Shown here piece after piece: positions 20,471 through 61,589 of a DNA stretch of 64,000 bases. The notes beneath the pieces were generated by a model. It was not told the origin of the DNA. It saw only the letters and a list, made by a program, of their open reading frames with translations, and made no database searches. The stretch spans positions 186,001 to 250,000 of the IMG/VR virus record IMGVR_UViG_3300032334_002567; one strand, written 5' to 3'. The position numbers and the translations under genes were made by a program. Position 1 is the stretch's first letter, and every line of letters begins with the position of its first letter.

Positions 20471-20494
20471 ACATAAAATAATATATAATTCATC

Positions 20495-22777
20495 ATGCTT
20501 GGCTTTATTGAATACTTAGAGAATTACAATGAACAACAGCTTTTAGATATTATTCTAGAAGCTGTTGATATTGATTTAAGCAGCGTTGACGGCGAGTGGG
20601 ATAGCGGTCGAAGTAACTTCTATTTTAACGTTCCTGGAGACAATTGCCCAGAGAGTAGAAGAATATATCCTGGAGGAAGATGCTATAAAGTACACATTTA
20701 CGGAGGCGACAGTGTTAGTATCGCTTTTGATAGAGGAGGTAGCTACCAAGATGCTGACGCTGGTGCTGCTTTTAATGCTATAAGAATCATCCTTGCAGCA
20801 ATTGGCGTGTATTTAGAAGAAAAAAAGCCTTCAAAAATAAGTTGGAGTGCTGTTTCAAAAAGCAAAGCTAATAAAGTTACTGGACAAATGCAGAATCCAG
20901 ATGCCAGAGCAAGTATCTACGAAAGATGGGCTAAGAGGCACCTATTTCCAGATAAATATGTTCCTTTGAATCGTGATCATTGGATTTCTAGGGAAAAATA
21001 TGATAACGAATATGTTTCAAATGGATATCCAGCTATTCCTCAAACTATAAACTTGCAGAGTTCTGATCGTGAAAAAACTATTGTTATCAAAGATTTAAAA
21101 GAGAAAGCTGCGGCTGCACGTGAAGAAATCCAAAGAAGAGAAATAGAAGCTAGGGAGAGGGAAGAACAGGAACGTGAACGTGTAAGGACCGAAAGAGCAC
21201 AGGCGGCACAGCAAGACCCAAGGCACAATCCTGAAGGGCTTAAAGTTGATGATTTAATTTATGTGCTTCAAAATAGACAGTATGTTGAAGAAGGTACTAT
21301 AGGAAAAATTACGGGTTTTGATTTCCGTCCTATAGATCCATACGCAGAAGATCGGGGTTATAAGCTTTATGTCAATTTTAAACAACAGGTGTCAGATGGT
21401 TCATTTCGGTCAGACATTTTTAGGTTGCCCGTAGAAAATGTACAAAAAGACACAGAAGAAAGACGCTCTGAAAGAGAAAGACAACGTGTAGCCAAGCTAC
21501 AGGAACTACTTGCTGATCGTAGGAGTAATCCTAACGATATTAAAGTAGGAGATGAAGTTGCCTATCGTTCAAGACGAGGTGACATGAATGTTTTCACCGG
21601 CACAGTAGAAGACCTTAACTTCAAAAAAGAGTATGGCGACTATAAACTTCTGGTTAAAATAAACTGGGATGATTCTTCAAAAATTTCCATGAGTCATGCA
21701 AACATTGAGTTTGATAACTATGTCAATTTAGAAAATGTATCTAAAGCATCTGTTTATAAAGACAAACTAGCTAGTCTAATATCAGATAGAACTGCCAATC
21801 CAAATGGAATTAAGGTAGGAGATCAGGTAATAACTTTTTTGGCGAGTGATCCAACACATCGACACAATGGTATGGTTGGAAAAGTAAGAGAAATGATGTA
21901 TCAAGAAGGTTATAATTGGAGCGGTACAGCAAATGACTACAAGCTACTTGCATTTGTTGATTGGGATGAAAGATCCGCAACTTCTTTAGGCCCTAATCAG
22001 AACAGGGCTGTAGATGCAAAAAGCCTCATCCTAAACAATTCAGATGTTAACAACCGTATTCAGGCTGCTACAAGAGGGCATCAAGTTCAACAGCAAGTTG
22101 ATAGAAACAGAGAAAGACACGAAAGAAGACTACGAGATGATGAAGAGTTAAGACGAAGTCAGGAGTCTGGAATAAGCTCTCAGACGCCAGAAGAACTAGA
22201 AAGATTAGTCAATCATCCATCTAATCCACAAAAAATTAGACCTGGCGATTTCGTCAAAGTTGTTAATCACTGGAGAAGAGGCCTAAGAAATAAAAAAGGT
22301 GTAGTCGTAGGCCTATACAGTTACACTTATGATCGAGATATAATATATGTAAAAATAAAGATACATAGGTCTGATAGATCTGCTACAACCCTTCAAATTT
22401 CAAACGTAGAGAGAGACACATCAGCTACAGCAGCCAGAATACAGAATAGACAAGCTAGAAGAGATTCTGTGAGTGCTCTTTCTAGAGGCTTTAATATTGG
22501 AGATAGAGTAAAGGTAACAAGAGGAAGATACAATCAAAGAACAGGTAGGATATTAAACTTCCGACTAACCGCTAGTGATGCTTTGTCTGCGATAATCGTG
22601 TCAGACCAAGGTACAACCGGCGTAGACGGGACACACCAGCCTTTTCCGAATTTTAGTGTTAATGTTAATTTTATTGAAAGTTTACAGGGAACACCAACAC
22701 AGCCGTCTAATCATGGCCTACCAGAAAACAATTTAACTTTTTCTGATTACTTAAGAATAGTTGAAAGTTTTAGTTAA
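20495..22777 (+). CDS. Large protein with head-targeting-like leader and about five KOW/SH3-like repeats
   Basis: MLGFIEYLE; repeats NPxxxK[VP]GD.V and FNIGDRVKVTRGRY. Confidence 0.7.
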   Translation: MLGFIEYLENYNEQQLLDIILEAVDIDLSSVDGEWDSGRSNFYFNVPGDNCPESRRIYPGGRCYKVHIYGGDSVSIAFDRGGSYQDADAGAAFNAIRIILAAIGVYLEEKKPSKISWSAVSKSKANKVTGQMQNPDARASIYERWAKRHLFPDKYVPLNRDHWISREKYDNEYVSNGYPAIPQTINLQSSDREKTIVIKDLKEKAAAAREEIQRREIEAREREEQERERVRTERAQAAQQDPRHNPEGLKVDDLIYVLQNRQYVEEGTIGKITGFDFRPIDPYAEDRGYKLYVNFKQQVSDGSFRSDIFRLPVENVQKDTEERRSERERQRVAKLQELLADRRSNPNDIKVGDEVAYRSRRGDMNVFTGTVEDLNFKKEYGDYKLLVKINWDDSSKISMSHANIEFDNYVNLENVSKASVYKDKLASLISDRTANPNGIKVGDQVITFLASDPTHRHNGMVGKVREMMYQEGYNWSGTANDYKLLAFVDWDERSATSLGPNQNRAVDAKSLILNNSDVNNRIQAATRGHQVQQQVDRNRERHERRLRDDEELRRSQESGISSQTPEELERLVNHPSNPQKIRPGDFVKVVNHWRRGLRNKKGVVVGLYSYTYDRDIIYVKIKIHRSDRSATTLQISNVERDTSATAARIQNRQARRDSVSALSRGFNIGDRVKVTRGRYNQRTGRILNFRLTASDALSAIIVSDQGTTGVDGTHQPFPNFSVNVNFIESLQGTPTQPSNHGLPENNLTFSDYLRIVESFS

Positions 22778-31230: not shown

Positions 31231-32082
31231 AGTTTCAAATTACGGTAGAAATCTTTAATGAAAAAAAGAACAGAAATGTGACAACTAAAGATTTAAAGCC
31301 TTTTGGCACAATTTCTTTCGTTAAAGGACTAACTAAAGCATTAAAGAAATCAATTAAGGCAAGTTGTTGGCCTTTTGATGCCAAAATTCATGTAAGCGTA
31401 TTAGATAAGCCAAAGCAAAAACAATCATGAAACAAGACAAATACATCACAGATTTTTTAATGTGCTTTTTTATGTTGATATTAGGCATATTGAGATTTTT
31501 GGATGACGATGTTATTGGCCTTACTGTATTTGTTTCATTGGCTTCTTTATTCTTTTTTTCTTCTTATTCATCTTGGTACACAGAAGAGTACGGTTCTCAG
31601 TCCAAAAAGGTGCAAGAGAACAGGACAAAAATTTTTAAATCGCTTTCAACTCCTAGAATAGAAACAAAAATAGAGAGCAACTCCAATATCACTACTTTAA
31701 TTGTCCCCTCTTTAGAGTTCTATAAGGAACAACAGAACAAGCAAAATAAGCTAAAATGATGATTTTTCTTATAGAAGATGAAGGTTTTACTGGAAAGTAC
31801 ATTCTTTTAAAAGAAGAAGGTGATCTTTGTGTTGTTCAAGAACTGAAATTAAGCGGCCAATGTGGAGAGCCTTTCCAGATAAGCAGGTCTCTTTTGGTAG
31901 AGCATAAAGCTTCTTTGCCGTGGCTAGCAGCTTTATCCGTATGGAAACTCACTAATAGTTCAACAAACCAAGAAGAAAAGTACAAAGACAAAGTTGTTAG
32001 TTTATTGGCACAAAAGTATAAAATGTCTTTTGAAGAAATGAATGAACTAATTGATGAGCTAAGAGAAGTAGACATTATCTGA
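31227..32082 (+). CDS. Three small coupled hypothetical genes (31227-31430, 31427-31759 membrane, 31756-32082)
   Basis: Overlapping start/stop codons. Confidence 0.6.
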
Positions 32083-33086
32083 TGATAGATTCTCTGAACA
32101 ATTATTGCGAGATGGGCCTACTTCACAAACAAGCCCATCCAACACTGCCTCTTTTTATTTGGAACTATACGCCAAAAGTTCAATATGAGAGGCTTTGGGA
32201 TTCGATAACTTTAAGTTGTCGAGGTCTAGTTACAGATCATCAAGGCAACGTTGTTGCAAAAAGCTTTGATAAGTTTTTTAACTTAGAAGAGCTTTCTTCT
32301 TTTGAAATTCCTGTGGAGCCTTTTGAGGTCTATGAAAAATTAGATGGTTCTTTGATTATTGTTTTTTGGTATCTAGGGCAGATCGTTGTTGCTTCAAGAG
32401 GCTCTTTTGATAGCGATCATGCCTTAGAAGCAAAAAGCATACTTGATGCATATGATCTTGATAAACTCGATAAATCCAAGATTTATTGTGGAGAACTAAT
32501 TGTACCTTGGAACAGAATTGTAGTCGGCTATGGAAACAAAAGATCTGTTGTTTTTCTAGCAAAGTTTGATACTGCTGGCAATGAATATCCAATAGACGAT
32601 TACAAGCAATATGGTTTTGAAGTAGTTAAAAAATTAGATCTATCAAACTTAGATCTATCTAAATTAAAACAACAAATAAGAGATGATGAAGAAGGCTATG
32701 TTATCAAGTTTAAGTCAGGTAAAAGATTAAAAATAAAAGGACAAGAATATATCAGATTACATAAGATAGTAACAGGAATTTCTAGTGTAGTTATATGGGA
32801 AAACATGATGAGTAATATCCCTATTGATGCTATTCTGGAAGAACTTCCAGATGAATTTTATAACTGGGCAAAAGACGTTCAAAGAAATCTTCAAGACAGA
32901 TACAACTTGATTCTTGAAGAGTCAACTAAAGTTTATCGTGAGTTCGAAACTAGAAAAGAGACTGCTCTTTATTTTCTTGAACAAAAATACCCTCAAGTTC
33001 TTTTTTCTATTCTAAATAAAAAAGACCCTAGCAAGTTAATATGGAAGTTAATTAGACCTGAGTACAAGACACCCTTTGGTGAATAA
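32082..33086 (+). CDS. T4 Rnl1-like RNA ligase
   Basis: CRGLV, KFFNL, YEKLDGS (motif I), SRGSF, EGYVI, LKIK. Confidence 0.88.
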   Translation: MIDSLNNYCEMGLLHKQAHPTLPLFIWNYTPKVQYERLWDSITLSCRGLVTDHQGNVVAKSFDKFFNLEELSSFEIPVEPFEVYEKLDGSLIIVFWYLGQIVVASRGSFDSDHALEAKSILDAYDLDKLDKSKIYCGELIVPWNRIVVGYGNKRSVVFLAKFDTAGNEYPIDDYKQYGFEVVKKLDLSNLDLSKLKQQIRDDEEGYVIKFKSGKRLKIKGQEYIRLHKIVTGISSVVIWENMMSNIPIDAILEELPDEFYNWAKDVQRNLQDRYNLILEESTKVYREFETRKETALYFLEQKYPQVLFSILNKKDPSKLIWKLIRPEYKTPFGE

Positions 33087-33916: not shown

Positions 33917-34557
33917 ATATAAATATAAATCCATTTTATTGTTATGTAAAAAAAGAACACTTGTTTGGATATGATGAAAAAAGTGAAGGCTTTGAGAGTG
34001 TTCTTGTATTTGCTGCAAGAAGCGTACCAGCTAGAGCCCTTCTTTTTCACATAATGACAGAGGGTGGTGCACAAAGAGCTAATGTTCCAATATCAGCCTT
34101 AGTTCATAAAAAGGATGCAGTAAGTATACCACTAGATTATCTACAGCTATGGGATTGTTTTGGAAAAGAAATTAATGTTGTTGTTTTTGACTACTTAGTT
34201 AACAAAAGGTGTCAGGTTGTATTAAAGGACAAAACAGTTAATTGGGGAACCTATATGATGACATTTGACTGGGCGAACAACACGTACTCAGACACACCAC
34301 AAGACTATAAGAATGCACATCTAATAAAGCTTGATAATGGTTGTTTCGCTCTTCAGCCAAATAATAGAATATTTTGGAGGGATTCTAATTTTATTACTAA
34401 ACCCATAAATATTGGCGACGTACCTAAATATAAAGTGGATAATAAGATCTTCGTTTGCGAGGTATCAGATCGCTGGACTTCCCAAGATACGGATTGTTTT
34501 TATTACGATGTTATGGAAGAAAATGAACTTCAAAAAGTGGATGACAGAACAACCTGA
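33913..34557 (+). CDS. Conserved phage hypothetical protein
   Basis: LQLWDCF, YMMTFDW, LDNGCFALQPNNRI. Confidence 0.7.
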   Translation: MNININPFYCYVKKEHLFGYDEKSEGFESVLVFAARSVPARALLFHIMTEGGAQRANVPISALVHKKDAVSIPLDYLQLWDCFGKEINVVVFDYLVNKRCQVVLKDKTVNWGTYMMTFDWANNTYSDTPQDYKNAHLIKLDNGCFALQPNNRIFWRDSNFITKPINIGDVPKYKVDNKIFVCEVSDRWTSQDTDCFYYDVMEENELQKVDDRTT

Positions 34558-34879
34558 AGCAGACTATATTGGGAAAGTAGCAATATTTTATATTCCCGAG
34601 AATAAGTTAACAAAATCTGTTAGAAAAGAACTTCATGATTTTTTTGTTAAAAACTATAACGCATATACACACGAAGTAAGTAAGATACAAGGTTATTGGG
34701 TCAAGCAAAACAAACTAATTAAAGACAAACACGAAAGATATGAAGTTGCTTTTGACGGAGAGCAAAATCTTAAGAAATTTGTCGGTTTTTTGTCTAAATT
34801 GTGCGATACCATAGAGGAAGATTCTATTTATTTAATTGTTGGTGATGAGTCTTATCTGGTAAGACCTAAGAAAAATTAA
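34523..34879 (+). CDS. Hypothetical protein with leader MNFKKWMTE
   Basis: Start re-set to 34523. Confidence 0.6.
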   Translation: MNFKKWMTEQPEADYIGKVAIFYIPENKLTKSVRKELHDFFVKNYNAYTHEVSKIQGYWVKQNKLIKDKHERYEVAFDGEQNLKKFVGFLSKLCDTIEEDSIYLIVGDESYLVRPKKN

Positions 34880-34896
34880 ATTTAAACTATATTAGA

Positions 34897-35184
34897 ATGG
34901 AGGATAAAATGGCAATATTCCAGAAAATTAAAGATTGGTTTGAGAAGGTCTGTTACCCATGTTGTGAAGGCAATGAGTGCAAATGTAATACCGCACAAAA
35001 TTCTTTACCAGCACCAGAAGTTGTAGCAGATAATGTGGTTGATACCGTAGAAGAAACGCCAACACAAGCTGTGGAAGCACCAATTAAATTAGAACCTGTT
35101 AAAAATCCAAAGAAGGCTGCCGGTGCCCATAAAAAGAAACATGCCAAAAAGCCTCCAAAGCCCTCAAAGAGAAAAAAGAAGTAA
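34897..35184 (+). CDS. Hypothetical protein with basic C-terminal tail
   Basis: GGAGG RBS. Confidence 0.6.
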   Translation: MEDKMAIFQKIKDWFEKVCYPCCEGNECKCNTAQNSLPAPEVVADNVVDTVEETPTQAVEAPIKLEPVKNPKKAAGAHKKKHAKKPPKPSKRKKK

Positions 35185-35185
35185 T

Positions 35186-35443
35186 TTACTTATTTTCTTG
35201 TCTTTTGATTCTTTCGTGGTGTTGGTAAGTCATTTGACCATGATCTACTTCATCCTCATCGGCTTTTGGACCCAGCTTTTGTAAAGCATCTGCCGCAATT
35301 GGTGTAAAGTACCCAGCGGAGTAATGGCTCCTCATATACCCATCAGGATAGGCCCAGTGAGATATGCCTGCTCGTGCGGCTTTTTCAGATATTACTGGTA
35401 GCTCTTTTTTATTATCTGTGCAAAATTCTATAAATGTTTTCAA
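35186..35443 (-). CDS. Small protein with leader MKTFIEF
   Basis: AAGGA RBS; TAAATA upstream. Confidence 0.65.
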   Translation of the reverse strand: MKTFIEFCTDNKKELPVISEKAARAGISHWAYPDGYMRSHYSAGYFTPIAADALQKLGPKADEDEVDHGQMTYQHHERIKRQENK

Positions 35444-35493
35444 TTTTCTTCCTTTAAATGCTTTTTTTGTACTAGTTTAAAGCATACTTATTT

Positions 35494-35812
35494 ATGGAGC
35501 TAACAATGAATTTTAAAGATGTTATATTTTCGGACAATACCGCAGTGCCTCAAAGTCTGACAGTAACGAATGTTTCAGCATTTAATGTCTCTGATGAACT
35601 TAATATGTGCTCAATTTTGGATGTGATAAATAAAAAATTTGTTGATGGAACATACTTAGAAATAGTCTCTATGAATTCTTAGGAGGTCTATGCAGTGTTT
35701 TTTTCAAGTTTGCTTGTGTGTAATTGCTGCTTCTTTTTCTCTAGTTGTATTCTCCGCCTCTGTTGGCTTCGCAACCGCAGTTTATCGTTTTATTTTTAAA
35801 ATAGAAGAATAG
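35494..35812 (+). CDS. Two small ORFs (35494-35682; 35690-35812, hydrophobic 40 aa)
   Basis: AGGAGG RBS before the second; manual translation. Confidence 0.45.
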
Positions 35813-35813
35813 A

Positions 35814-36431
35814 ATGAACTTTTTTGAAATATTTGATAAAGCTTATTGTATCAATTTGGACAAAAGAAAAGATAGACTACTCAATTTCGAACTACAGGTT
35901 AAAAAGTATAATTTGGGGCCATATGCGAGGTTTAGAGCCTTTGATGGCTTTAAGATGCCCACAAACCTTGATAAAGGAAATGCAGGCCTAATTAAGTCCG
36001 TAATCGCTGTATTAAAAGAATGTTTAGATGAAGGTACCAGCAAGGTACTTATTTTAGAAGATGATTGTGAGTTTAAAGAAGATATTATAAATATATACGA
36101 ATATTTTAAATATGTACCCTCTGATTGGGACATGGTCTATTTTGGTGGAAATCACAATATCCATATTGGAAAGGAACCACCAAAAAGAATAAACGAAAAA
36201 ATAGCTAAACTACATTACACTTTCACTACTCATTGTATTGCAATAAAAAGGCATATGTTTGAGCCTATAATTCAAAAAATAGGTAATTATGAATCGCCAA
36301 TTGATGTTGCTTACCAACAGTTTCAACAAACACACAACGTATATGGATTTTATCCTTCTCTTGTAAAACAAGCCTCTGGATTTAGTGACATAAGGGGCCA
36401 GCATGTTGACTATGACTGGTTGATTACGTAA
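35814..36431 (+). CDS. Glycosyltransferase family 25-like
   Basis: CINLDKRKDR, LILEDD, DWDMVYFG. Confidence 0.85.
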   Translation: MNFFEIFDKAYCINLDKRKDRLLNFELQVKKYNLGPYARFRAFDGFKMPTNLDKGNAGLIKSVIAVLKECLDEGTSKVLILEDDCEFKEDIINIYEYFKYVPSDWDMVYFGGNHNIHIGKEPPKRINEKIAKLHYTFTTHCIAIKRHMFEPIIQKIGNYESPIDVAYQQFQQTHNVYGFYPSLVKQASGFSDIRGQHVDYDWLIT

Positions 36432-36911
36432 TTAGTCTGAAAAGACGGCACACCAATAAAGCCTGCCCTCTTTGTCTTCTTCTACACCGAATCCAACCCT
36501 CTTATAGCTTGTCCCTAGTATATTCCATCTATGCATTGGAGACCACATCCAAGCTTCAACAACCAACTTTTCTGTTTCTTGTCCCCAAGCAATGTTCTCT
36601 CCAACTAAACTCGAATCTTCATTAACCTTAATAAGGTCTGACATGCTTGAATGATACAAAGAATTCTTTTTAACCATTTTTTGTGCGTGTTTTTGTGCAT
36701 ATTCGCACAGTTTTTTGTCAAGTGTTAATGGTTTTAGTTTTCTAGAGGTTCTTTCTCGGTTATGAGCAACCAGAAGTTTTTCTTTTGTGCTAATAATTGG
36801 AGCACTGATTTCATCTGGTATCTGGGGCGTAGATTTTTGGGGCACTTCTTTTTTTTGGGAGCTGCATCCAATTAGAACAAAAAATGCGATTAAAATAATG
36901 ATTGTTTTCAT
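36432..36911 (-). CDS. CAP/SCP-domain lipoprotein
   Basis: Lipobox LIGC; HNRER, GENIA, WMWSPMHRWNIL. Confidence 0.88.
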   Translation of the reverse strand: MKTIIILIAFFVLIGCSSQKKEVPQKSTPQIPDEISAPIISTKEKLLVAHNRERTSRKLKPLTLDKKLCEYAQKHAQKMVKKNSLYHSSMSDLIKVNEDSSLVGENIAWGQETEKLVVEAWMWSPMHRWNILGTSYKRVGFGVEEDKEGRLYWCAVFSD

Positions 36912-36945
36912 ATTGTATTTATTAATGTGCTAAATATATATATTT

Positions 36946-37107
36946 ATGAAAACTTTTAATCAGTGGCTTCAAGAAATGGTGGGGTCAAATTCGATAACGA
37001 CTTGCAAGGACAGAAAAAATCCAAATTTTCAAATTTGGGGAGCTATGTCTGACTTGGGCTGCAAGCCGGAAAAGAAAATTCCAACAATGAAATTCAATAA
37101 AAAATGA
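36946..37107 (+). CDS. Small protein with leader MKTFNQWLQE (53 aa; missing from the ORF track)
   Basis: Manual translation; TATATATAT just upstream; ATGA overlap with the PLA2 gene. Confidence 0.65.
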   Translation: MKTFNQWLQEMVGSNSITTCKDRKNPNFQIWGAMSDLGCKPEKKIPTMKFNKK

Positions 37108-37595
37108 AACTAAAATTTACAGAGTGGCTAAAATTAGAAGAAATCGATACTCGTAATCTTAAAGATTACATGAAGACTAAGTTTGATCTAAACATAGACG
37201 AATTACCTCTTAACCCTATGGACTACGCTAGTAGAGCTGAAACGGAACCAGAGGGTCAAGGATTAGACACTCAAGCACCTTGGTACAGATACGGAAACTA
37301 TTGCGGACCAGGACCGGCATTAGCTAGTTCATGTAATAAACTTGCAACAGGAGATAAGCTTCCTCCTGCGAAGAACAGTGTTGACAGTCAATGTAAGAAT
37401 CATGATGTTGATTACTGTAAATGTGGAGTAGATTGGAAGGCTGGATTGCCGGGTGGTGGCACACCTTGTTCAAAAGAAGCCGATAAAGATTTTGTTTCAG
37501 GCCTTCAAAGATTAAGAAAAAAGATAAATCCAGAAGAAAGAAGGATAGCGGATATTATTAGGACTTATTTTACTTGGAAGAAAATATTCGGTTAG
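37104..37595 (+). CDS. Phospholipase A2-like protein with head-targeting-like leader
   Basis: YGNYCGPG Ca2+ loop; DSQCKNHDVDY catalytic His-Asp; downstream ADKDF. Confidence 0.8.
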   Translation: MKLKFTEWLKLEEIDTRNLKDYMKTKFDLNIDELPLNPMDYASRAETEPEGQGLDTQAPWYRYGNYCGPGPALASSCNKLATGDKLPPAKNSVDSQCKNHDVDYCKCGVDWKAGLPGGGTPCSKEADKDFVSGLQRLRKKINPEERRIADIIRTYFTWKKIFG

Positions 37596-39088
37596 TGATT
37601 TCTATTTTCTACTTGAGCTAGTTGTTGTCCAACAATTGGTGTTCTTGTTTGCTTTCTTAACATCTCAGGAACAAATGGTACATCGTACTTCTTAAGTACC
37701 TCTTTAAGGTTATTCGCATAAGGTGCTAAACTTGGACTTTGTAGGTCGTTATTTTTGATTGCCTTTATCACATTATCGATGTTCTGCTTGGTTGGCGGGA
37801 AGTTCAATTCTAAGTCGCCGGAATCTGTTTTCTTAATTAAGTGTTCATTGCTAAAACCTTCTGCGTTTCTAAAAAAGGAACCATCTTTATTTAAAAGCAA
37901 TACTTTATTATTATAGTAATAAGTTGCGGGGTCATGTTTAACCATAATTCCTTCATAAAGTTGAGACTGATTTCCATACCATTTTACCACAACTATTGTA
38001 TTGATTAGCTTGCTTAAAAAAGATTGAATTTTTCTTTTAAATTCCTTTTCTTTACGTATTTTCTTTAGTCCTATTACAGTGTCTCTTTGTGTTTGTAATA
38101 TGGACATCAAAGCTTCTTTTTTATAAGAACTCGGCAGTGTTTTTATTATTTCTCGGATGTAACTTCGGGTTAGATACAAATTAGGAGAAACCCTTAAAAA
38201 ATCAGCGGGTCTCAAATAATCTGTGTAGAATCTCTGATACATTAAGCTCATTGCAGGATCGGCTGCAGAGAAATTAAAGCCATTTACTTTTGACCCAGAT
38301 TTTTCTTCTTCTTGATTCATTTTCGCCACAGAAGCCAATAAATGATTGTATATTTCTAAAGCGGTTTTTGTGTCGTTATTTTTTGTAAGGCTGTAGCCGT
38401 TTGGTCCTTCAAAATATATTTCATAAACATTTTTTAATTGCTTGCCTTGAAAGTTTATGCTTGATGGTTCGATACCTACTTTGTATTCGTTGCCTTTTAT
38501 TTCAAACTTTGCTTCATAGCCTCCATGGCTGTCTGGTGGGTTTTCTTCTTCATGAGAAATTCTACGTTCTTCCTGTTCTGATTCGTGGTCACTCATTTTT
38601 TCTTGTACACAGGCGTCTATTGCTTCATCTCGGGCTTTTCTTATAGCTTCTTCCATTTCTTCTCTTCTTTCATCCATTTTATCTCGCCAATCTTGTAGAG
38701 CACTATCATATTCAGACTGAGCACTTTCTAGTTCTTCTTCCCAATTAGCAACTGCCTCTTCATGTTCCTCATCTGATGACGAGTCTTCTCTTTCTGGTTT
38801 GGGGTTTTCTTTTTCCCATTCCTCTCCATTTATGTGTTCAAAGTCTGGGTCTTCATCTGGCTCATCATATATGGGTTCGTCATAAACATCTTCATAACTA
38901 ATGTCATCACCCGCATCCATACAATCTTCATAAGCACTATCATGATCAAATTCTTCTCCTTCGAATTCTTCTGATTCACCAGGTCTTTTTTTTAGTTTGA
39001 TTTTGTCGAGTGGTAATTGAGAGGCACTACGCAAACCTTCCCAGAATATTTCGCCGTTATTACTTAGCCATTCACTGAAGTTGAACAT
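37592..39088 (-). CDS. Paralog-family protein with leader MFNFSEWL and a long acidic insert
   Basis: D/E-rich N-terminal third; shared FEGPNG...IYNHLLASV...GFNF...YL.P domain. Confidence 0.75.
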   Translation of the reverse strand: MFNFSEWLSNNGEIFWEGLRSASQLPLDKIKLKKRPGESEEFEGEEFDHDSAYEDCMDAGDDISYEDVYDEPIYDEPDEDPDFEHINGEEWEKENPKPEREDSSSDEEHEEAVANWEEELESAQSEYDSALQDWRDKMDERREEMEEAIRKARDEAIDACVQEKMSDHESEQEERRISHEEENPPDSHGGYEAKFEIKGNEYKVGIEPSSINFQGKQLKNVYEIYFEGPNGYSLTKNNDTKTALEIYNHLLASVAKMNQEEEKSGSKVNGFNFSAADPAMSLMYQRFYTDYLRPADFLRVSPNLYLTRSYIREIIKTLPSSYKKEALMSILQTQRDTVIGLKKIRKEKEFKRKIQSFLSKLINTIVVVKWYGNQSQLYEGIMVKHDPATYYYNNKVLLLNKDGSFFRNAEGFSNEHLIKKTDSGDLELNFPPTKQNIDNVIKAIKNNDLQSPSLAPYANNLKEVLKKYDVPFVPEMLRKQTRTPIVGQQLAQVENRNH

Positions 39089-39091
39089 AAT

Positions 39092-39403
39092 TTATTCCTC
39101 TACAAAAAAAGCTTTCTCCCACCAGTCATCGTTTATCTGTTGGAAGCCCGCAGCCAAATATTCAGCAGTTTTGTCTTTGCTAACAAATTTCGCATGACCT
39201 GCACCGTCATAAGCAAGGTACATTGAAGTATTTGGAATTCTTGCAATAAAATTGGATCCCTGATTCATTACCTTCCCAGATTGATTTATCGTGGGTGGAG
39301 ATTTCTCAAACTGCATATCAACTGCAGCTACAATTTGATCTTTAATTTTCACCGGATGCGGCAAAGTGAAGCTTGCCATTTCTATAAATTGTTTAAATTC
39401 CAT
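39092..39403 (-). CDS. Small protein with leader MEFKQFIE
   Basis: TATATA 4 nt before the ATG. Confidence 0.65.
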   Translation of the reverse strand: MEFKQFIEMASFTLPHPVKIKDQIVAAVDMQFEKSPPTINQSGKVMNQGSNFIARIPNTSMYLAYDGAGHAKFVSKDKTAEYLAAGFQQINDDWWEKAFFVEE

Positions 39404-39442
39404 AATTTATATATTAACAATAGAAAAAAAATGGGGGTATGA

Positions 39443-40176
39443 TTGTTTACTTTAGCATTATTGGCAATTTTTATCTTTATTTTAGCTATACTTATAGGCC
39501 CAATTGTTTTCTTGGTTCATAAGGTAGACTTTGTCCCAAACTACATAAAATTTACTATTTCTTTTGTTTCAATTTGTTGCTGTGCTTATATGATAGCGGT
39601 AGTGCCAGTTCCTATATTGCAACTATTCTTTTTAATTTCTATAGGCTTTATCTTAGCTGCAAGGGGCAAACCTCACATAAAATAGTGCAGATGTATTGCG
39701 TAAACCAAGCAAAGAAAAAAGTGCCCCATCATGCAAAGAACCAAGAATTTGCATGTATTTGCCATTGGGCTAGTGTACTCTAGTTGCTTTACTATTTGAT
39801 GTACACGAATCTTGTCAAGCTTATTTTGACATATTAAATAGTTGAGCTGAACATCTGTGCAATCACCACTAACGTATCTTTTTGCAAGGTTGTATTCTAT
39901 ATCTGTATTTTCCATTTTAGGCCTCAAAATATTGTAGTATTGAATGCCTAAATATATCAAAATGGAGGAAGAATGGAAATATTAACTAATTTTTGGCTTT
40001 GGCTAGCTGTATTCATTGTTTCCGGTGGCTACATTCTTTATATCAAAAAGAAAGAAAGAGAAAACGTACAGGCACAGTTTGTTATTACCGGTACGTTGCT
40101 TATTGTGTTTTATGCGGTATGCTTTTGTTCAGGAATATGCACTATTTTAAATTTTATTCGCAACTGGTTTTTTTAA
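39443..40176. CDS. Three small membrane-protein ORFs (39443-39685 +, 39673-39960 -, 39973-40176 +)
   Basis: Hydrophobic segments. Confidence 0.5.
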
Positions 40177-40184
40177 GGTAAAAT

Positions 40185-41420
40185 ATGAATTTTAAACAAT
40201 GGCTCCTTACAGAAGAGCGTCAATCAATGGGTGCATCTATCCCCATGCCAGATGAAGTACAAATTCTATCCAATCTGTTTAGTAGTTTTGGAGCTAAATT
40301 GTATGCTGTTGGTGGAGCTATAAGAGACTACTTATACCATATATTCCACGATAGACATATTCCTTACAACCCCAAAGACGTAGATTTAACCACAGATCAA
40401 CCACCAGATCAAGTTACAAGAATACTTAGCTCTCCAGCAGCAGTTCAGCATGGGATTAGGGTCTTACCTAAGGGAGAAAGCTTTGGAGTTATCAGTGCTA
40501 TTATAAATGGCAAAGAATTTGAGATCGCAACCTTCCGAACAGAAGTCTATGATGCTGCCACGGGTGATGGCAGAAGACCAGATAGTGTTCAATACAGTAC
40601 AGCCGCTGAAGACGCCAAGCGTAGAGACCTTCACATAAACGCATTGTTCTATGATCTTCATAGCAAAGAAATACATGATTACAATGTAGATGAGAATGGA
40701 GAGGGAGAAGGATTTAAGGACATTAGGAACAAAAAAGTTAGAGTTGTAGGAGATCCTTTTGAGAGATTTAGAGAAGATAAGCTTAGAGTTTTAAGGCTTG
40801 TCAGATTCTTTTGTAGGTTTAATGAGGACGTGATAACCAGTCACTTAGATTCAAGAACATTATCTGCCGTAGATAACTTCAAGGATTTGAAGGGAGTTAG
40901 TGGCGAAAGAATAGCAAATGAATTTATTTCTGGACTTAAGACTTGTAAGAGTACAAAAAACTACATTTTAAGCTTCAAGTCTTTGGGGTTGATACCAACA
41001 ATATTTCCCGGCTTAAATGTTAATACTTCTGAAATGGATGCTATGGACTCTTCAAGAAACTCAATAGCAGTCACTGCTTTTTTACTCAGAGACAATGATA
41101 TAAAAGTTATTAAATCTAAGCTAAATTCACTCAAGTACTCTAACGAATTTATAAACACACTTTCTTTGGTGCTCATGGCAGCTTACAAATTAGATAAGTC
41201 TAATTTTATTCGTTTGTTAAGAATGAGAGATAATCTAAATGATAGCTTAAAAAGTTCGCTTGTTGAATTCGGTAAAATAAGTGGTCTGGAAAGAGAAATG
41301 AGTCATTTTGTACATTACACTCAAGTCACAAAATCAGAAGACTATATGCATCTACAGAATGAAAAAAGAGGAGAGAAGATGAGTGAAGATGAATACGAAA
41401 ATTATAAGGAAAATTCATGA
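40185..41420 (+). CDS. cca: Class II tRNA nucleotidyltransferase (CCA-adding enzyme) with leader MNFKQWLLTEE
   Basis: VGGAIRD, DVD, EIATFR.E, RRDLHINAL, FREDKLRVLR; poly(A) polymerase GRRF signature absent. Confidence 0.88.
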   Translation: MNFKQWLLTEERQSMGASIPMPDEVQILSNLFSSFGAKLYAVGGAIRDYLYHIFHDRHIPYNPKDVDLTTDQPPDQVTRILSSPAAVQHGIRVLPKGESFGVISAIINGKEFEIATFRTEVYDAATGDGRRPDSVQYSTAAEDAKRRDLHINALFYDLHSKEIHDYNVDENGEGEGFKDIRNKKVRVVGDPFERFREDKLRVLRLVRFFCRFNEDVITSHLDSRTLSAVDNFKDLKGVSGERIANEFISGLKTCKSTKNYILSFKSLGLIPTIFPGLNVNTSEMDAMDSSRNSIAVTAFLLRDNDIKVIKSKLNSLKYSNEFINTLSLVLMAAYKLDKSNFIRLLRMRDNLNDSLKSSLVEFGKISGLEREMSHFVHYTQVTKSEDYMHLQNEKRGEKMSEDEYENYKENS

Positions 41421-41908
41421 ACTCTTTCATTTCTTGGCTAGAAAATAGAGATAGAAAAGAACTCATACTAATGAGAGGTGTTTCATCATCGGGTAAAAGC
41501 ACTGTAGCTAAAAGTTTGGTTGGCGGTGGAAAGATATTCTCTACAGATGACTTTTTCATGCAGGGAAATAGGTATGTTTTTGACCCAAAAAATATTGGTA
41601 CAAACCACAAACTAAACCAGAGCAGAACAGAAGAAGCTATGAAACAGGGTATTAGTCCAATTATAATAGATAATACTAATACTGAGTCTTGGGAGATGAA
41701 ACCTTACGTTTTATTGGCCGATAATTATGGATACTCAATAAAAATAGTAGAACTACCACCTTTAGACATAGAAGAGTTGATGAGACGACAAGAGAGTAGA
41801 AGATCTTTTAATAAGGCTTTGCCTAGAAAGTCCTTGGAGCGGGCGATAGAGCGCTATCAACACAATGTAAGTGTAGACGATATTCGAAATAGTTCGCCTC
41901 CTTTTTAA
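41417..41908 (+). CDS. AAA_33/N4BP2-like P-loop polynucleotide kinase with leader MNSFISWLE
   Basis: RGVSSSGKST, STDDFF, IIDNTN, WEMKPYV; ATGA-coupled to cca. Confidence 0.82.
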   Translation: MNSFISWLENRDRKELILMRGVSSSGKSTVAKSLVGGGKIFSTDDFFMQGNRYVFDPKNIGTNHKLNQSRTEEAMKQGISPIIIDNTNTESWEMKPYVLLADNYGYSIKIVELPPLDIEELMRRQESRRSFNKALPRKSLERAIERYQHNVSVDDIRNSSPPF

Positions 41909-41910
41909 TT

Positions 41911-42498
41911 ATGTGTTTATTTGATGCCTTAATCCTTTTATATTGTTCTCCAATTATACTGCTTTATTTTTTGATGTGCTCAACCATACCTTTCATCAGG
42001 GTAGGAGAAATAAAGAAGGGTAAGGGTGTAGATTTGTTTATTTGCCGGGATATAATCCACTCAGACTTTATTTTTAAATCTAGTCTTTGGAGTGAAGTTT
42101 TTGAGCCAAAAGGCGAATACATTAAAATCGGTTGGGGAGACAGAAAAATATTCTTAGAAACAAAGGTTTGGGCTAATCTAAGAGCCTTTGATGTAATGAC
42201 AGCATTTGTCGGTATCAATAAAACAGTTTTAAGAGTAGAGTTTTTGGACACAGTGCCAGAAGGCTGTGTCAAAATGGAAATAGATGACTGCCAACTAGAA
42301 GTGATTAAAATCCACGTTAACCAATCTTTTAGTGGTAAACCTATAAAGAAGCAAAGTTGGCACTGTGAACGTGGAGACTTTTACGAGTCTAAGTTGAGAT
42401 ACAATTGTATAACAAATTGCAATAACTGGGTTAATCGTGCTCTCTTCGTATGCAGAGCAACCAATAGAGTTTGGTGTCCACTAAGTTTATACTTTTAG
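41911..42498 (+). CDS. DUF2459-like protein
   Basis: IHSD, IGWGDR, TNCNNW. Confidence 0.7.
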   Translation: MCLFDALILLYCSPIILLYFLMCSTIPFIRVGEIKKGKGVDLFICRDIIHSDFIFKSSLWSEVFEPKGEYIKIGWGDRKIFLETKVWANLRAFDVMTAFVGINKTVLRVEFLDTVPEGCVKMEIDDCQLEVIKIHVNQSFSGKPIKKQSWHCERGDFYESKLRYNCITNCNNWVNRALFVCRATNRVWCPLSLYF

Positions 42499-42692
42499 TG
42501 CTTTTTCTTTTTGTGATTTTTCTTTTTATGTTTTTTCTTGAGGCTGTTGCGACTAGCCTTTACATAAACTTGATCCGACCCAGTTTGATTCGCTAGTGGA
42601 GGATGAGTTCCTATACCGCCATATTGGGGTGGGTAAATTCCAACTATTCCTTCTCCAAGTCTGCTTTTTAGAAATTCAAAAAATGTTTTCAT
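42495..42692 (-). CDS. Small basic protein with leader MKTFFEFL
   Basis: LGE after the leader; K/H-rich tail. Confidence 0.65.
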   Translation of the reverse strand: MKTFFEFLKSRLGEGIVGIYPPQYGGIGTHPPLANQTGSDQVYVKASRNSLKKKHKKKNHKKKKH

Positions 42693-43000
42693 TGGTTAAA
42701 TACGTTCTTTCCTGTTGAAGCTTGCATTTTGCTTGTTTCTTCTACTAGCTGTTCAAATAAAGCTAACATTCTGGGATTTCTTGCAACATACCTTAGTAAA
42801 GGAACATATGTGTTTGACTTCTCTCCAATTTTATTTGAAATTCTATTTAGAACTCTTGCAAATGCATTTTTGTCCTCGTGCCCGGTATTTAGCTCGTTAT
42901 CATCAGGGTTAGCAGCGGCCTGTGTTTGTCTATTAGTCATTTGAGGGTTTGCTACAATCGGTTGTGCATTCATATTTTGAACTAATTCATAGAAATTCAT
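42689..43000 (-). CDS. Hypothetical protein starting MNFYELV
   Basis: AAGGA RBS; TATATA at 43027. Confidence 0.6.
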   Translation of the reverse strand: MNFYELVQNMNAQPIVANPQMTNRQTQAAANPDDNELNTGHEDKNAFARVLNRISNKIGEKSNTYVPLLRYVARNPRMLALFEQLVEETSKMQASTGKNVFNQ

Positions 43001-43132
43001 TTTATTCCTTTTCTGTGTGGACAAACTATATATGCTTAAGGGAAAAAATCAAAATGACAGACTTAATGATATTAAATTATTTGGCCTTTTTTGCGTTTGT
43101 TTTAGTTCTATTAACTTGGATACATTTCAACA

Positions 43133-43567
43133 ATGATTAAATTTAGTGTATGGTTAGAAAACAAGATTAAAGCTATTCGAACAGCTAGTGATGCTGAGTT
43201 GGACCAAGTTGTCAAGGGAGCACCTTACACTTCTCCTATGTTAAGAAGAATTAACTATTTAACAAATAATGGGAAACCGTTCGATCCTTCTAGTCCGGTA
43301 AATGATTACTTTCAACATTATGTTGGCGTTAACAAAACAAGATCTAGAAAAGCAAATAAAGATAGAGCCTGGGCTTTAGGGCTGGAAGTGCCAGAAGAAG
43401 ATAGAGAAATAATTCGGGTCGGGGGCATTGAAAAACCCAGCAGTGCGGTTCCTTATCTTAAACCAGATCACATAAAAACAATTACTAGGCTGGGTGCAGG
43501 AAAGCAAAAGCCCAGAGATGCACAAAGATTTGTAGGTACTTACAAAAGATTATTTGGCGAAAGATGA
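43133..43567 (+). CDS. Hypothetical protein with leader MIKFSVWLE
   Basis: Coupled to the next gene. Confidence 0.65.
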   Translation: MIKFSVWLENKIKAIRTASDAELDQVVKGAPYTSPMLRRINYLTNNGKPFDPSSPVNDYFQHYVGVNKTRSRKANKDRAWALGLEVPEEDREIIRVGGIEKPSSAVPYLKPDHIKTITRLGAGKQKPRDAQRFVGTYKRLFGER

Positions 43568-44280
43568 AAACATTCAAACAATACCTAGAAGATCGTCAAA
43601 TAATGATTTTTTCTACTAGACCGGTAGAGTTATATCATGGTTCAAACACTGGAGCCGATAATAGTGCTTTAAATAGCTTGTTAAAAGATGGCATTAAACC
43701 AACAGTAGCTCAAGGACATGGCCAAGGATCAGGTTTTTATGTATGGTCAGATAAAAACAGTGCCATCAACCACACTAAAGCCATAACCTCAGGCTCTATT
43801 ACAACTAATGCTAAGACAGACGGTCTTCCAATGATAGTAACAGTCGAAGCCATAGCAGACCCAGAAAAATGGGATTTAGATTATGAATCTAATAAACGAT
43901 CAATCGTTAATTGGCTACATGATAATTTTGAAAAACTTCAACCGCTATTGAAACCAGAAGACAAAGTTCAACTAAGGTCTAAACAGAATAGAGAAATCGT
44001 AAACAATAGAGATGAAAAAATAATGTCAAAGGGTGTAAGTGTTTCTTTAGAGACTTACAAAACACTATATGCTCAGAGTGAACCTAATATTCGGGACGGA
44101 GAGGTTATAGCACCAATTATAAATAAGCTACAACAAAAAGACCCTCAAACTGTACATAAATTCGAAGAACTATTTTTTGCCAACATGAAGCCAGGGGTTG
44201 CAATAAAGTATGTTGGCAGTGAAATATTAAGACCCAAAAGAATAGAGATATTTAAAGATGGTCAATGGGTTCAAGCTTAA
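43564..44280 (+). CDS. ADP-ribosyltransferase-like (H-Y clade) protein with leader MKTFKQYLE
   Basis: LYHGS...SLLKDGI...GSGFYV...A pattern of PARP/diphtheria-toxin-type ARTs. Confidence 0.6.
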   Translation: MKTFKQYLEDRQIMIFSTRPVELYHGSNTGADNSALNSLLKDGIKPTVAQGHGQGSGFYVWSDKNSAINHTKAITSGSITTNAKTDGLPMIVTVEAIADPEKWDLDYESNKRSIVNWLHDNFEKLQPLLKPEDKVQLRSKQNREIVNNRDEKIMSKGVSVSLETYKTLYAQSEPNIRDGEVIAPIINKLQQKDPQTVHKFEELFFANMKPGVAIKYVGSEILRPKRIEIFKDGQWVQA

Positions 44281-44636
44281 TTAGGGAATCTATTTCTGAT
44301 GTGGTCAACGTCTTTCATTATATCAGTGTTACACCTAGTCCAGTTTTTAAGGTGCCCGAAAAATAGATGACAATTAAAGCTTTCGCTTTCACAAAGAGAA
44401 ATTAGATTTTCTGGGTCAAGTTCTCTGTCAGGATCTAGATGAACTGGGACTATATGATGTGGCACAACATTCTTGTCGCTTCCGCATATCGCACATCTTG
44501 GATTATTTTCTAGATGTGCAAGTCTAACTTTTCTCCATTTTGAAGATCTTGGATATGCTAGAACCTGCACCTCATCTACAGAAAGGCTCTGTATCTGATC
44601 CCGAAAACAAAATAATTTTTTTAAGAACTCTATCAA
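44277..44636 (-). CDS. HNH endonuclease
   Basis: CAICG...PHHIVP...NLISLC...CH. Confidence 0.85.
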   Translation of the reverse strand: MIEFLKKLFCFRDQIQSLSVDEVQVLAYPRSSKWRKVRLAHLENNPRCAICGSDKNVVPHHIVPVHLDPDRELDPENLISLCESESFNCHLFFGHLKNWTRCNTDIMKDVDHIRNRFPN

Positions 44637-44648
44637 ATGAAACTTTCC

Positions 44649-45032
44649 TTATTCTGGTTTTGAAGAGTAGTGATTTCCACTTCTTGTCATTCTTGACCAT
44701 GAAGAGAAATCAGAAGATCTTAGCTTGCTACCTTTTTCAGCTAATCCAATAGCTTTACTAACTGCTTCTTTTATTTTGGATTCTTCTTTTAATCCATATT
44801 CTAAAGTTCTTTTAATTTCAAGAAAGACTTTTAGCAACTCACTATTTAATTCTACAAAGTTTGCTATTCTTTCGTCTTTTTCATCTATCATGTCTGCGAT
44901 TTGACGCAAATGATGTGTATGAGAAACCTCTGATTTGAGTGTGCCCGCTGGAGGAGTGCGTGGAAGGCCAATATCCCCGGTCGGCGGTACATTTTCGGAT
45001 GATGATTCTAAAAATTGCTCAAAACTTTTCAT
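44649..45032 (-). CDS. Hypothetical protein with leader MKSFEQFLE
   Basis: AGGAG RBS; TATATA at 45058. Confidence 0.7.
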   Translation of the reverse strand: MKSFEQFLESSSENVPPTGDIGLPRTPPAGTLKSEVSHTHHLRQIADMIDEKDERIANFVELNSELLKVFLEIKRTLEYGLKEESKIKEAVSKAIGLAEKGSKLRSSDFSSWSRMTRSGNHYSSKPE

Positions 45033-45126
45033 ATTTGTCTCCTGTAGAATTCACTTTTATATATCAAAACTTGACAAAAAAAGCAAATTAGGCTATCATT
45101 CACTGATCTTGCCAAGGAAATATCAC

Positions 45127-55337: not shown

Positions 55338-56762
55338 ATGCCATATAGACGTTATTCAATATTAAAAGGACCAGCAGAAGACAATAAAACATTAATACAA
55401 AATATTGCTAGCCCCAAGACTTCTGGGCCTTATTTGCCTATGGAACTAGCTACTATTTATAATTTTCCATCTGGCTTCAATGGCTCGGGTCAAAAAGTAG
55501 CATTTATTGAATTAGGCGGTGGATTTGTACAGTCTGATTTAGATGCCTTTTTTGCTTCTTTTGGAATAACCGCACCTACTGTTCAATTTGTTTCTGTAAA
55601 CGGTGCACAGAACCTTCCAACAAATGCAAATTCTGATGACGTAGAAGTAATGTTAGATTTAGCTGTTACTATTGGAGTCGCTCCCGGTATAACTCCAATT
55701 GTTTATATGGCTCCTAATTCGATTCAAGGGTTTGTAGGAGCTATAAATAGAGCTGTAACAGACGCAGTAAACATTATAAGTATATCGTGGGGAGCACCAG
55801 AGCCCTATTGGAATAATACTGAATTAGCTATGATGAATGCAGCTTTTCAAGCTGCTGTTAATGCTGGGATATCTGTCTTTACTGCCTCCGGAGACGCAGG
55901 AGCTAGCGATGGTTTAAGTGGCTTGAATGTTGATTTTCCAGGCAGTTCTCCTTTTGTGACTAGTTGTGGTGGTACAACTTTAAATGCTAGTCAAAATACT
56001 TACTTATCAGAAACTGTTTGGAATAATTCTACTTATTCTTCAACAGGTGGTGGATTGAGTGCGAAATTTGGACTCCCCACATATCAGATTAATGCGGGAG
56101 TAAAGAATAATACAGGAGCAAATTCGGTAAGAAGAGGCGTTCCAGACGTTGCAGGAAATGCAGACCCAGATACTGGCATAATAGTTCCTGTTGATGGTGC
56201 CAATTACATTGTAGGCGGCACAAGTGCTGTGGCTCCTTTATGGGCAGGGCTCACGGCCGTTCTTAATCAAGGTTTGGGTAGGAATTTAGGTTTCTTGAAT
56301 CCAATAATATATCCTTTATTTTTAGATCATCGAGGCGACCCTGCTACACCGCTTCACGATATTACCTTAGGCAACAACAATGGCTATACAGCTAAATCTG
56401 GCTGGGACGCTTGCACCGGTTGTGGAAGTCCCAATGCACAAGTTCTTTATAATCTACTTTCTTCTTCACCTACTCCAACCCCCACCCCCACAGCAACACC
56501 AACTCCCACTCCAACAAGAACAAGAACTCCTACCCCCACTCCAACAAGAACAAGAACTCCTACCCCAACTCCAACAAGAACAAGAACTCCTACCCCAACT
56601 CCAACAAGAACCCCAATTCCAACAAGAACACCAACCCCTACACCAACTAGAACAAGAACACCGACGCCAACTCCAAGGTCTACAAGAACTCCAACACCCA
56701 CCCCAAGGGTCATGAGAACACCAGCTCCAAGAATACTCAAGAAAAAAAGAGATTCAAAATGA
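55338..56762 (+). CDS. Peptidase S53 (sedolisin/kumamolisin-like) with Pro/Thr/Arg tail
   Basis: [44 protein letters not shown]. Confidence 0.93.
56468..56730 (+). repeat. Coding tandem repeats (30-bp [10 protein letters not shown] units)
   Basis: ACTCCAACAAGAACAAGAACTCCTACCCC[CA] repeated from 56508. Confidence 0.9.
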
Positions 56763-57412
56763 AAAAATATATCGCTATTTTATCGCTGTTACTAATTATT
56801 ATTATTGGATATTTCTGCATAGAAAATCACGAATCATATAGCAAAGAAGAAATTACTTTCACTATAGACAAACCCTATTTATCAACAGTAAAGGGTCTAG
56901 CAACAAAGAACTCTTTAGAGAAAATGGTAGAAGAAAATGATGGTATGCTTGTTTACAAGAACTGGGAGAATTTTGATATTGAAGTGCCCCAAAGAATATT
57001 GAGAATAAAAGAATATAAAGTACATGGCAAACTCAGATTTACGGTAGAAAAAACAGATCATGATCTTGGACAAATTAAATTACCATTTATACAAGAAATA
57101 CATTTAGACAACCACATCTTTGACATAAGCACTAAACTAGTTTCACCACAAAAACACGTACCATCCTACAACAAGACCATACAAATAAGTCCGCTCTTTG
57201 AAGACAACAATAAGATCGCTCAAAAAACTCATGTAAAAATAAGCAGTGAACTTAAGATAAAGAAATTAATACCAATATTTTTCAAAAAATTTATGGACGA
57301 TAAGGTAGAGCAAACCAACCAAAAAGATATAGACCAACTCAAGAACAATATATTAAATATATCTAATCAAAAAAGTATATTAACTTTTAAGCTACAACCT
57401 CAAGGGATTTAG
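56759..57412 (+). CDS. Membrane-anchored hypothetical protein
   Basis: N-terminal hydrophobic helix; ATGA-coupled to the peptidase. Confidence 0.65.
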
Positions 57413-58481: not shown

Positions 58482-58551
58482 GCTTTTCCTAATATTTTCT
58501 ATTATTTTGTAATATTTTATATACACTTTCTCTTATACATTTAGGTGTAAT

Positions 58552-61115: not shown

Positions 61116-61245
61116 GTTTTATATATGAGCCTACTATATTAATTAGGTTCAGGTTTACCTGTCTTTGACAGATAAACATGGTAACTTCGAAAGAAGAAAT
61201 AATAGTTTTTAGCGTGGTTTTCTATTCAAAAAAATCACGCTTTAT

Positions 61246-61318
61246 GCGAGTGTAGCTCAGTTGGTAGAGCATTTGATTTCCAATCAAAATGTCGCCGGAT
61301 CGTACCCGGTCACTCGCT
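61246..61318 (+). tRNA. tRNA-Gly (UCC); no encoded CCA
   Basis: Cloverleaf GCGAGTG...CACTCGC-T; anticodon loop TTTCCAA; U73 discriminator; atypical T-loop ATCGTAC. Confidence 0.9.
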
Positions 61319-61589
61319 CTTTTCTTTAAATTTTGTCCAATAACCTTTACCGTTTACAAAATTTTATAAGAGAATTTTAATCTTTATTCGCTCTCATCTT
61401 TAAAAGGCTTAAATCCAACCCTTTTCATATTTTCGTATTCTTCTATATTCTTCCAGACTTCTCTTACTGGCTGGGACATTATTATTGCAATCAATAAGAA
61501 CAATAGTGCCAAAACACAAAATTGCATAGTTTATCTCCTGTGAAAAGTGACGTAAATTATCAAATACAATTGGAAAAATCAATCCTGAA

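Follow-up and report, generated by a model that had tools for sequence, protein, structure and literature searches.

In a 64,000-nucleotide stretch of viral DNA, hereafter the window (positions 186,001-250,000 of the 381,443-bp IMG/VR viral contig IMGVR_UViG_3300032334_002567), a gene at positions 37104-37595 of the + strand encodes a protein that combines the features of a phospholipase A2 (PLA2) with a short N-terminal leader. The catalytic residues of PLA2s are present, gene and residues are conserved among relatives, and the predicted structure has the PLA2 fold. The leader is shared by a series of otherwise unrelated open reading frames (ORFs) and differs little from the capsid-targeting sequence of phage T4. 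On balance we lean towards the view that the enzyme would be packaged into the phage head and ejected into the host together with the DNA.

The phospholipase A2 and its relatives

The PLA2 ORF codes for 163 amino acids in three parts, all on the + strand. Its leader (residues 1-13, MKLKFTEWLKLEE, positions 37104-37142) carries F5, W8 and L9 as well as L11-E12-E13, a possible Glu-specific cleavage site. A variable linker (residues 14-58, 37143-37277), which is modelled with low confidence and is much shorter or absent in most homologues, connects it to the PLA2-like catalytic core (residues 59-163, 37278-37592), which is basic with a predicted isoelectric point (pI) of 9.2. The core contains the Ca2+-binding-loop motif Y63-G-N-Y-C-G-P-G70 (37290-37313), the catalytic motif D94-x-x-C97-x-x-H100-D101-x-x-Y104 (37383-37415) and, on the third helix, the distal residue D127 (37482-37484), a candidate counterpart of the second catalytic Asp of secreted PLA2s. 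Six conserved cysteines are found in all (residues 67, 77, 97, 105, 107 and 122), of which C67 and C97 presumably correspond by position to the loop-to-helix disulfide of secreted PLA2s. The two motifs and the extra cysteines had been pointed out in the original prediction, which also held that the protein lacks a signal peptide and that its gene is coupled to a second, equally tagged ORF; all of this is borne out. The highest 15-residue Kyte-Doolittle mean within the first 60 residues is -0.21, and because this region contains no hydrophobic stretch the protein should have neither a Sec signal nor a membrane anchor. The partner ORF (36946-37107, +, 53 amino acids) is joined to the PLA2 gene by an ATGA overlap of its stop codon (TGA, 37105-37107) with the PLA2 start codon (ATG, 37104-37106). 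It begins with the leader MKTFNQWLQE (F4, W7, L8, E10), and its remaining 43 residues are basic (pI 9.8, charge +5.5).

The proposed identity of the protein was supported by profile and structure searches. Pfam family PF08398, the parvovirus-type PLA2-like domain, matched it slightly above the cut-off of 23.9, with 25.0 bits over the full length and 26.5 bits for the core alone, and matched all 14 of its close homologues, with a best E of 2.3e-8. When 1.84 billion representative proteins were searched exhaustively, no more than 36 relatives emerged at E <= 0.001, and the family is therefore rare. In an alignment of 38 sequences H100, D101 and Y104 are invariant, conservation reaches 90 % or more at C67, G68, P69, D94, C97 and D127, and all six cysteines are invariant across the 14 closest family members. 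Comparison with an 89 % identical relative (L022) reveals 29 synonymous and 16 non-synonymous codon differences in the PLA2 gene, the latter distributed over the leader (none), the linker (11 within residues 16-58) and the core (five, all conservative); this pattern of differences indicates purifying selection on the gene. The relative also shares, unchanged, the ATGA overlap and the final 11 codons of the 53-residue ORF.

The AlphaFold2 model of the full protein shows the three-helix PLA2 fold, with a predicted local distance difference test score (pLDDT) above 90 over residues 60-163, and modelling of the core alone gave an overall pLDDT of 92.1 and a predicted TM score of 0.84. Among the top Foldseek matches to solved structures, PLA2s (from rice, actinomycetes, truffle, humans and snakes) are the named family met most often, beside unrelated helical proteins. 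The top 30 matches among the AlphaFold-DB clusters all have a probability of 1.00 and TM scores of 0.53-0.66; 13 of them are named, ten as PLA2 or PLA2-like and the other three as a parvovirus coat protein, a Maverick capsid-like protein and a transposase helix-turn-helix domain. The ESM Atlas likewise points to PLA2. Searches of the chain sequences of the Protein Data Bank (PDB) with the protein and with the family profile yielded chance matches only, and NCBIfam holds no model for the PLA2 or for six other tagged proteins. Tailed-phage protein clusters that bear automatic 'PLA2 domain' labels exist.

Judged by its sequence and predicted fold, the ORF encodes a Ca2+-dependent phospholipase A2 of the PF08398/secreted-PLA2 superfamily. 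Inactive homologues of PLA2 are known from other lineages, and it is conceivable that here too lipid hydrolysis was lost and the fold serves a structural or binding role, given that activity is deduced from sequence and fold. We consider this very unlikely, as the His-Asp dyad, the Tyr, the glycines of the Ca2+ loop and the distal Asp are invariant or nearly so across 38 diverged sequences.

Among known PLA2s three invite comparison. The original prediction had drawn a parallel to the VP1 protein of parvoviruses. The parallel stands as regards the fold, since parvovirus VP1 proteins rank first in the viral structure library BFVD and the VP1 unique region belongs to the same Pfam family and shows the same D-x-x-x-x-x-H-D-x-x-Y and Y-x-G-x-G motifs, and the two would also share the idea of a lipase that is kept inside a capsid and exposed at entry. 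It fails as regards architecture, for the phage PLA2 is a free-standing tagged protein of 163 residues, followed by a convergent gene, rather than the N-terminus of a capsid protein. It also has six conserved cysteines, whereas the parvoviral PLA2 domains are, to our knowledge, devoid of disulfides, and the virus is a tailed double-stranded DNA phage whose target would be a bacterial envelope. The plant secretory PLA2 of rice (PDB 2wg8, group XI) is about 21 % identical and differs in having a signal peptide and more disulfides. Finally, the prophage-borne PLA2 SlaA of Streptococcus pyogenes and S. equi is the sole homologue in 50,697 GenBank phage records (tblastn, 31 % identity, E 8e-4), and a profile comparison of the PLA2 family with it (hhalign) extends over the whole core (probability 97.1 %, E 4.8e-11), including the CGPG loop, the C-x-x-H-D motif and the C-terminal Y-F helix. 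This clear homology might suggest that the phage gene is likewise a 'moron', that is, a secreted toxin gene of benefit to the host. SlaA however is a 191-residue exported virulence factor of a temperate phage, whereas the phage PLA2 has no N-terminal Sec signal and instead bears a capsid-type leader that is common to many non-toxin proteins, and its gene, far from sitting at the end of a small prophage, is part of a 381-kb phage genome that also has genes for replication, sigma factors and the tail. We therefore give this explanation hardly any credence.

A leader shared among unrelated proteins

The leader conforms to the pattern M-(1-3 residues)-F-x-x-[W/F/Y]-[L/I], behind which there is usually a Glu. 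Searched with a simple form of this pattern, the window yields 14 ATG-started ORFs, as compared to 0-4 in 20 shuffled versions and one in the reversed sequence, and three further tagged ORFs start with TTG at 35443 and with ATG at 639 and 58481. This brings the tagged ORFs of the window to at least 17, of which 12 start within 34.5-45 kb, and by these counts the shared leader is no accident. The motif also occurs on other genes in five more huge-phage contigs (L004, L005, L009, L012 and L013) and just outside the window, where an additional tagged ORF (L023, 17469-17957) starts with MINFQNWLEN. A logo of 55 leaders reads M-[N/K/S/E]-F-K-E-W-L-E-x-x-E, and in 41 of 44 curated leaders a Glu follows no more than eight residues past the hydrophobic pair.

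Within the PLA2 family the motif is N-terminal in 19-20 of the 38 members, while five members that lack it there have F-K-x-W-L near the C-terminus. Homologues in which the motif is not N-terminal are P0018, P0020, P0023, P0027, P0034 and P0036, and loci L009, L012 and L013 belong here as well. In P0018 the PLA2 domain is separated by it from a second domain, which matches NUDIX faintly. Checks of the contigs confirmed this PLA2-NUDIX gene to be a single ORF and the genes of P0020 and P0034 to stop after the motif. Since PLA2 homologues carry the motif at either end, it appears to be a portable terminal peptide. A signal at the level of nucleotides or of translation was considered and rejected in view of the C-terminal copies in some homologues, the varying Leu codons of the leaders and the presence of tags on operon-internal genes; the latter two observations place the constraint at the protein level. 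Nothing relevant to the leader pentapeptides, or to a PLA2 of huge or jumbo phages, came up in literature searches.

In T4, internal proteins are cut once beside an N-terminal capsid-targeting sequence of about ten residues (MKTYQEFIAE), and any protein fused to this sequence gets packaged (PMC8442874). Leader mutants assign targeting mainly to residues 4 and 7 and processing to residues 8 and 10, and Asp at position 10 blocks cleavage but leaves targeting intact; T4 Alt is in addition trimmed C-terminally and so has propeptides at both termini (PMC9026906). As a positive control, the leader pattern was applied to two pieces of the T4 genome and recovered ipII, ipIII and gp61.1 (MKTFKEFIKE); ipI starts with MKTFKEF. 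T4 gene 61.1 (L017, 18966-19130, -), whose record states hypothetical protein only, thereby emerges as a 54-residue protein with a start like that of a capsid-targeting sequence. In the window, MKTFNQWLQE of the 53-residue ORF, MKTFKQYLED, MKTFFEFLKS and MKSFEQFLES have their aromatic residues, I/L and Glu at the T4 positions, and the 53-residue ORF meets the T4 spacing exactly (aromatics at 4 and 7, I/L at 8, Glu at 10). In the PLA2 itself L11-E12-E13 corresponds to a T4-type L-x-E site.

Like those of IPI, IPII, IPIII and Alt of T4, these are short N-terminal leaders with two aromatic residues three apart, followed by I/L and then Glu, and as in the T4 internal proteins one leader precedes several unrelated cargos, mostly small and basic or enzymatic, in a variable gene cluster. 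One tagged cargo resembles an ADP-ribosyltransferase (ART), as does Alt, and the C-terminal propeptide of Alt parallels the tags at the other end of some homologues. Different from T4, which has three internal proteins, the 64 kb of the window contain at least 17 tagged genes. Moreover, Trp is preferred as the second aromatic residue, the spacing of the Glu varies, some cargo is tagged C-terminally, the cargo includes a lipase and enzymes of the tRNA-repair type, and the 381-kb genome is not demonstrably T4-like. The near match to the T4 signal nevertheless constitutes the strongest argument for a head-targeting leader as first proposed: the sharing of the leader and its closeness to the T4 sequence are confirmed, and packaging as such would follow by analogy.

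The tagged proteins are mutually unrelated and comprise the PLA2, small basic proteins, a 498-residue acidic protein and enzymes. The main cluster (34523-45032) has tagged starts at 34523 (+), 35443 (-, TTG), 36946 (+), 37104 (+), 39088 (-), 39403 (-), 40185 (+), 41417 (+), 42692 (-), 43133 (+), 43564 (+) and 45032 (-). It includes a CCA-adding tRNA nucleotidyltransferase (40185-41420, +; PolyA_pol head domain, E 1.6e-23), an AAA_33/polynucleotide-kinase-like ATPase (41417-41908, +) and the ART-like protein of 238 residues (43564-44280, +). The ESM Atlas neighbours of the latter are ADP-ribosyltransferases (ART-PolyVal, AcrIF11-type, PARP and DUF3990), no match to it was found in Pfam, PHROG or the GenBank phages, and it is a possible counterpart of T4 Alt. 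Two tagged paralogues of it lie near the PLA2 gene of L004 (14683-15540 and 15544-16416). An untagged RNA ligase similar to T4 Rnl1 is encoded 7 kb upstream of the CCA-adding enzyme/kinase pair (32082-33086, +), and together the three could form a tRNA-repair kit that is partly delivered ready-made. In L009 a PolyA_pol-family gene adjoins the PLA2 gene. Outside the cluster, tagged ORFs are found at 639-911 (+, MKTFREWQ), 20495-22777 (+, 760 residues, MLGFIEYLEN), 57387-58481 (-, 364 residues from the ATG at 58481, MEFRNWFEFEE) and 60057-61115 (-, 352 residues, MISFKEWL). A tblastn search of the GenBank phages with the tagged 760- and 238-residue proteins gave no match.

Several of these genes are preceded by a promoter-like motif. 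A palindromic copy, TATATATA, at 36934-36944 lies in the 34-bp gap in front of the 53-residue ORF and ends 2-4 nt before its ATG at 36946. The tagged operon heads 20495, 36946, 39403, 45032, 58481 and 61115 have TATATA[A/T][A/T] at a distance of 2-35 nt before the start, and sites of this type are located at 618-625, 20481-20489, 36934-36944, 39406-39415, 45056-45063, 58516-58523 and 61118-61125. The variant ATATATAT precedes the start at 639 by 13 nt, TATATAAT lies 6 nt before that at 20495, and TATATAAA lies 34 nt upstream of 58481 and 2 nt upstream of 61115. Within 45 nt upstream of the start, TATATAWW occurs in 5 of 13 tagged but only 3 of 124 untagged long ORFs (odds ratio 25, Fisher p 1.7e-4). 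Its 21 sites in the whole window do not exceed chance (17.8 expected); what departs from chance is solely where they lie with respect to tagged genes. The motif resembles the late promoter of T4, TATAAATA. Several of the sites would yield almost leaderless mRNAs.

Proposed head packaging and its alternatives

How might such a protein be loaded and act? The 53-residue ORF and the PLA2 gene would be cotranscribed from the motif at 36934-36944, which is of the type common to other tagged genes. To judge from T4, where ten such residues suffice, the leader would bind the scaffolding core of the prohead and the protein would thus be built into the head. A Glu-specific prohead protease would then remove the leader, probably after E12 or E13, and the basic six-cysteine core would stay with the DNA, its disulfides being free to form once the virion is outside the cell. 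At infection the PLA2 would be ejected through the tail along with the ART-like protein, the CCA-adding enzyme, the kinase and the small basic proteins. Its substrate would be host phospholipid and its site of action the envelope or periplasm, which offer Ca2+ and an oxidising milieu; the six invariant cysteines and the Ca2+ loop are better suited to the envelope than to the cytoplasm. Such hydrolysis might help the genome to cross the envelope or might condition the membrane, and if the lipase is packaged we would put the specific role in genome passage well below an even chance.

Several observations weigh against this reading of the PLA2. Inspection of roughly 89 kb of the 381-kb contig (about 179-268 kb) revealed neither a head gene nor a scaffold or prohead protease. 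The leader of the PLA2 itself is offset by one residue relative to that of T4 (F5, W8, L9, E12/E13), and a strict T4 L/I-x-E site is present in only 18 of 44 leaders. Packaging of tRNA-repair enzymes would be unusual, and the six cysteines must survive synthesis in a reducing cytoplasm. Matches of the model to solved structures are weak, with a best Foldseek E of 0.26. Finally, the phage encodes a ClpX of its own.

This last point leads to a different explanation, in which the leader serves sorting or turnover instead of capsid targeting, perhaps as a degron or adaptor tag that is read by the phage ClpX or by another hub, and the PLA2 acts only briefly in the infected cell. ClpX recognition tags can sit at either protein terminus, as does the motif within the PLA2 family, the gene at 8712-10031 (+) is a true ClpX equivalog (559 bits), and cytoplasmic enzymes such as the CCA-adding enzyme and the kinase are among the tagged set. 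Yet the leader is nearly identical to the capsid-targeting sequence of T4, a phage without ClpX, and propeptides at both termini are likewise found in T4 Alt (PMC9026906). Moreover, a six-cysteine, Ca2+-loop PLA2 is ill suited to a reducing, low-Ca2+ cytoplasm, and the two genes that follow ClpX include no recognisable ClpP. We regard a turnover tag as unlikely. Downstream of ClpX lies a gene for a gamma-glutamyl cyclotransferase-like protein (10653-11063).

The immediate neighbours of the PLA2 gene bear on a further alternative. Divergent to the 53-residue ORF, with a gap of only 34 bp between the two starts, is a gene for a lipoprotein (36432-36911, -) with the lipobox LIGC and a CAP/SCP domain. 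It may be an immunity partner that protects the infected cell from the PLA2, or a lipid-binding partner. The divergent pair recurs in a distant huge-phage contig (L003, CAP gene at 9328-9807, -; CAP 42 % and PLA2 46 % identical) and is not present at five other PLA2 loci. A lipoprotein next to a basic enzyme of a membrane-active type that, like canonical endolysins, has no signal peptide could indicate an accessory of lysis, which would accumulate late in the cytoplasm, pass through holin lesions to the envelope and attack one of its membranes, outer or inner, from inside; the leader would then play no part. But no holin, endolysin or spanin was recognised nearby, and a leader that is strictly conserved (0 changes) and is kept or moved to the C-terminus across the family would be left unexplained, so that we judge a role in lysis quite improbable. 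On the other side, the PLA2 gene is followed by the convergent gene for the 498-residue tagged protein (37592-39088, -; leader MFNFSEWL), the N-terminal third of which is very acidic. The two stop codons overlap (37592-37595), which leaves no space for a terminator between the genes.

Genomic setting and implications

The window has a GC content of about 36 % and encodes an SNF2 helicase, two sigma-like factors, the RNA ligase and ClpX mentioned above, glycosyltransferases and two tRNAs, tRNA-Met (CAT; 7850-7923, -) and tRNA-Gly (TCC; 61246-61319, +). A megablast search of the 50,697 GenBank phage records with 15 kb around the PLA2 gene gave no match. The source is a huge uncultured tailed phage without a close relative among the GenBank phages. 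Two large tail-protein-like genes (985 and 469 residues; L023, 10630-15006) and the tagged ORF of L023 mentioned above occupy about 248.7-256 kb of the contig, partly to the right of the window, and tail-fibre-like genes lie just past its right edge. CsrA-like genes are found to the left of and inside its start (L025, 3748-3939 and 10869-11045), and a 474-residue protein (55338-56762, +) shows a weak match to subtilases (Peptidase_S8, 24.0 bits against a cut-off of 21.8). The DNA of the phage turns up in lake and freshwater metagenomes. A scan for the host, in which the nucleotide-sugar epimerase was compared with one genome per species, returned only matches of 22-27 % identity in unrelated phyla. 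The planctomycete host suggested in the original prediction thus receives no support from either the habitat of the metagenomes or the epimerase scan.

What would be new, on present evidence, is an internal protein tagged in the manner of T4 that has a PLA2 as its cargo and belongs to a much enlarged set of tagged effectors. We tentatively suggest, at somewhat less than an even chance, that a lineage of huge freshwater phages expanded a T4-style tag into a head-loading system which operates from either terminus and serves dozens of effectors, the PLA2 included. With the same reserve, its effectors may be named as the PLA2, the ADP-ribosyltransferase-like protein, the CCA-adding enzyme, the polynucleotide-kinase-like ATPase, hydrolases and NUDIX proteins. 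The closeness of the tag to the T4 sequence makes the idea directly testable in T4.

If the packaged-lipase reading is true, the PLA2 would be the first lipase inside the head of a tailed phage and the bacterial-virus counterpart of the parvovirus VP1 lipase, and tailed phages, like parvoviruses, would bring a lipase to the membrane that has to be crossed. Phages would furthermore deliver tRNA-repair and protein-modifying enzymes ready-made, ahead of any phage gene expression. And if the tag indeed loads the head, a simple sequence rule would allow the set of injected proteins, which is otherwise invisible for uncultured phages, to be read from the genomes of huge phages.
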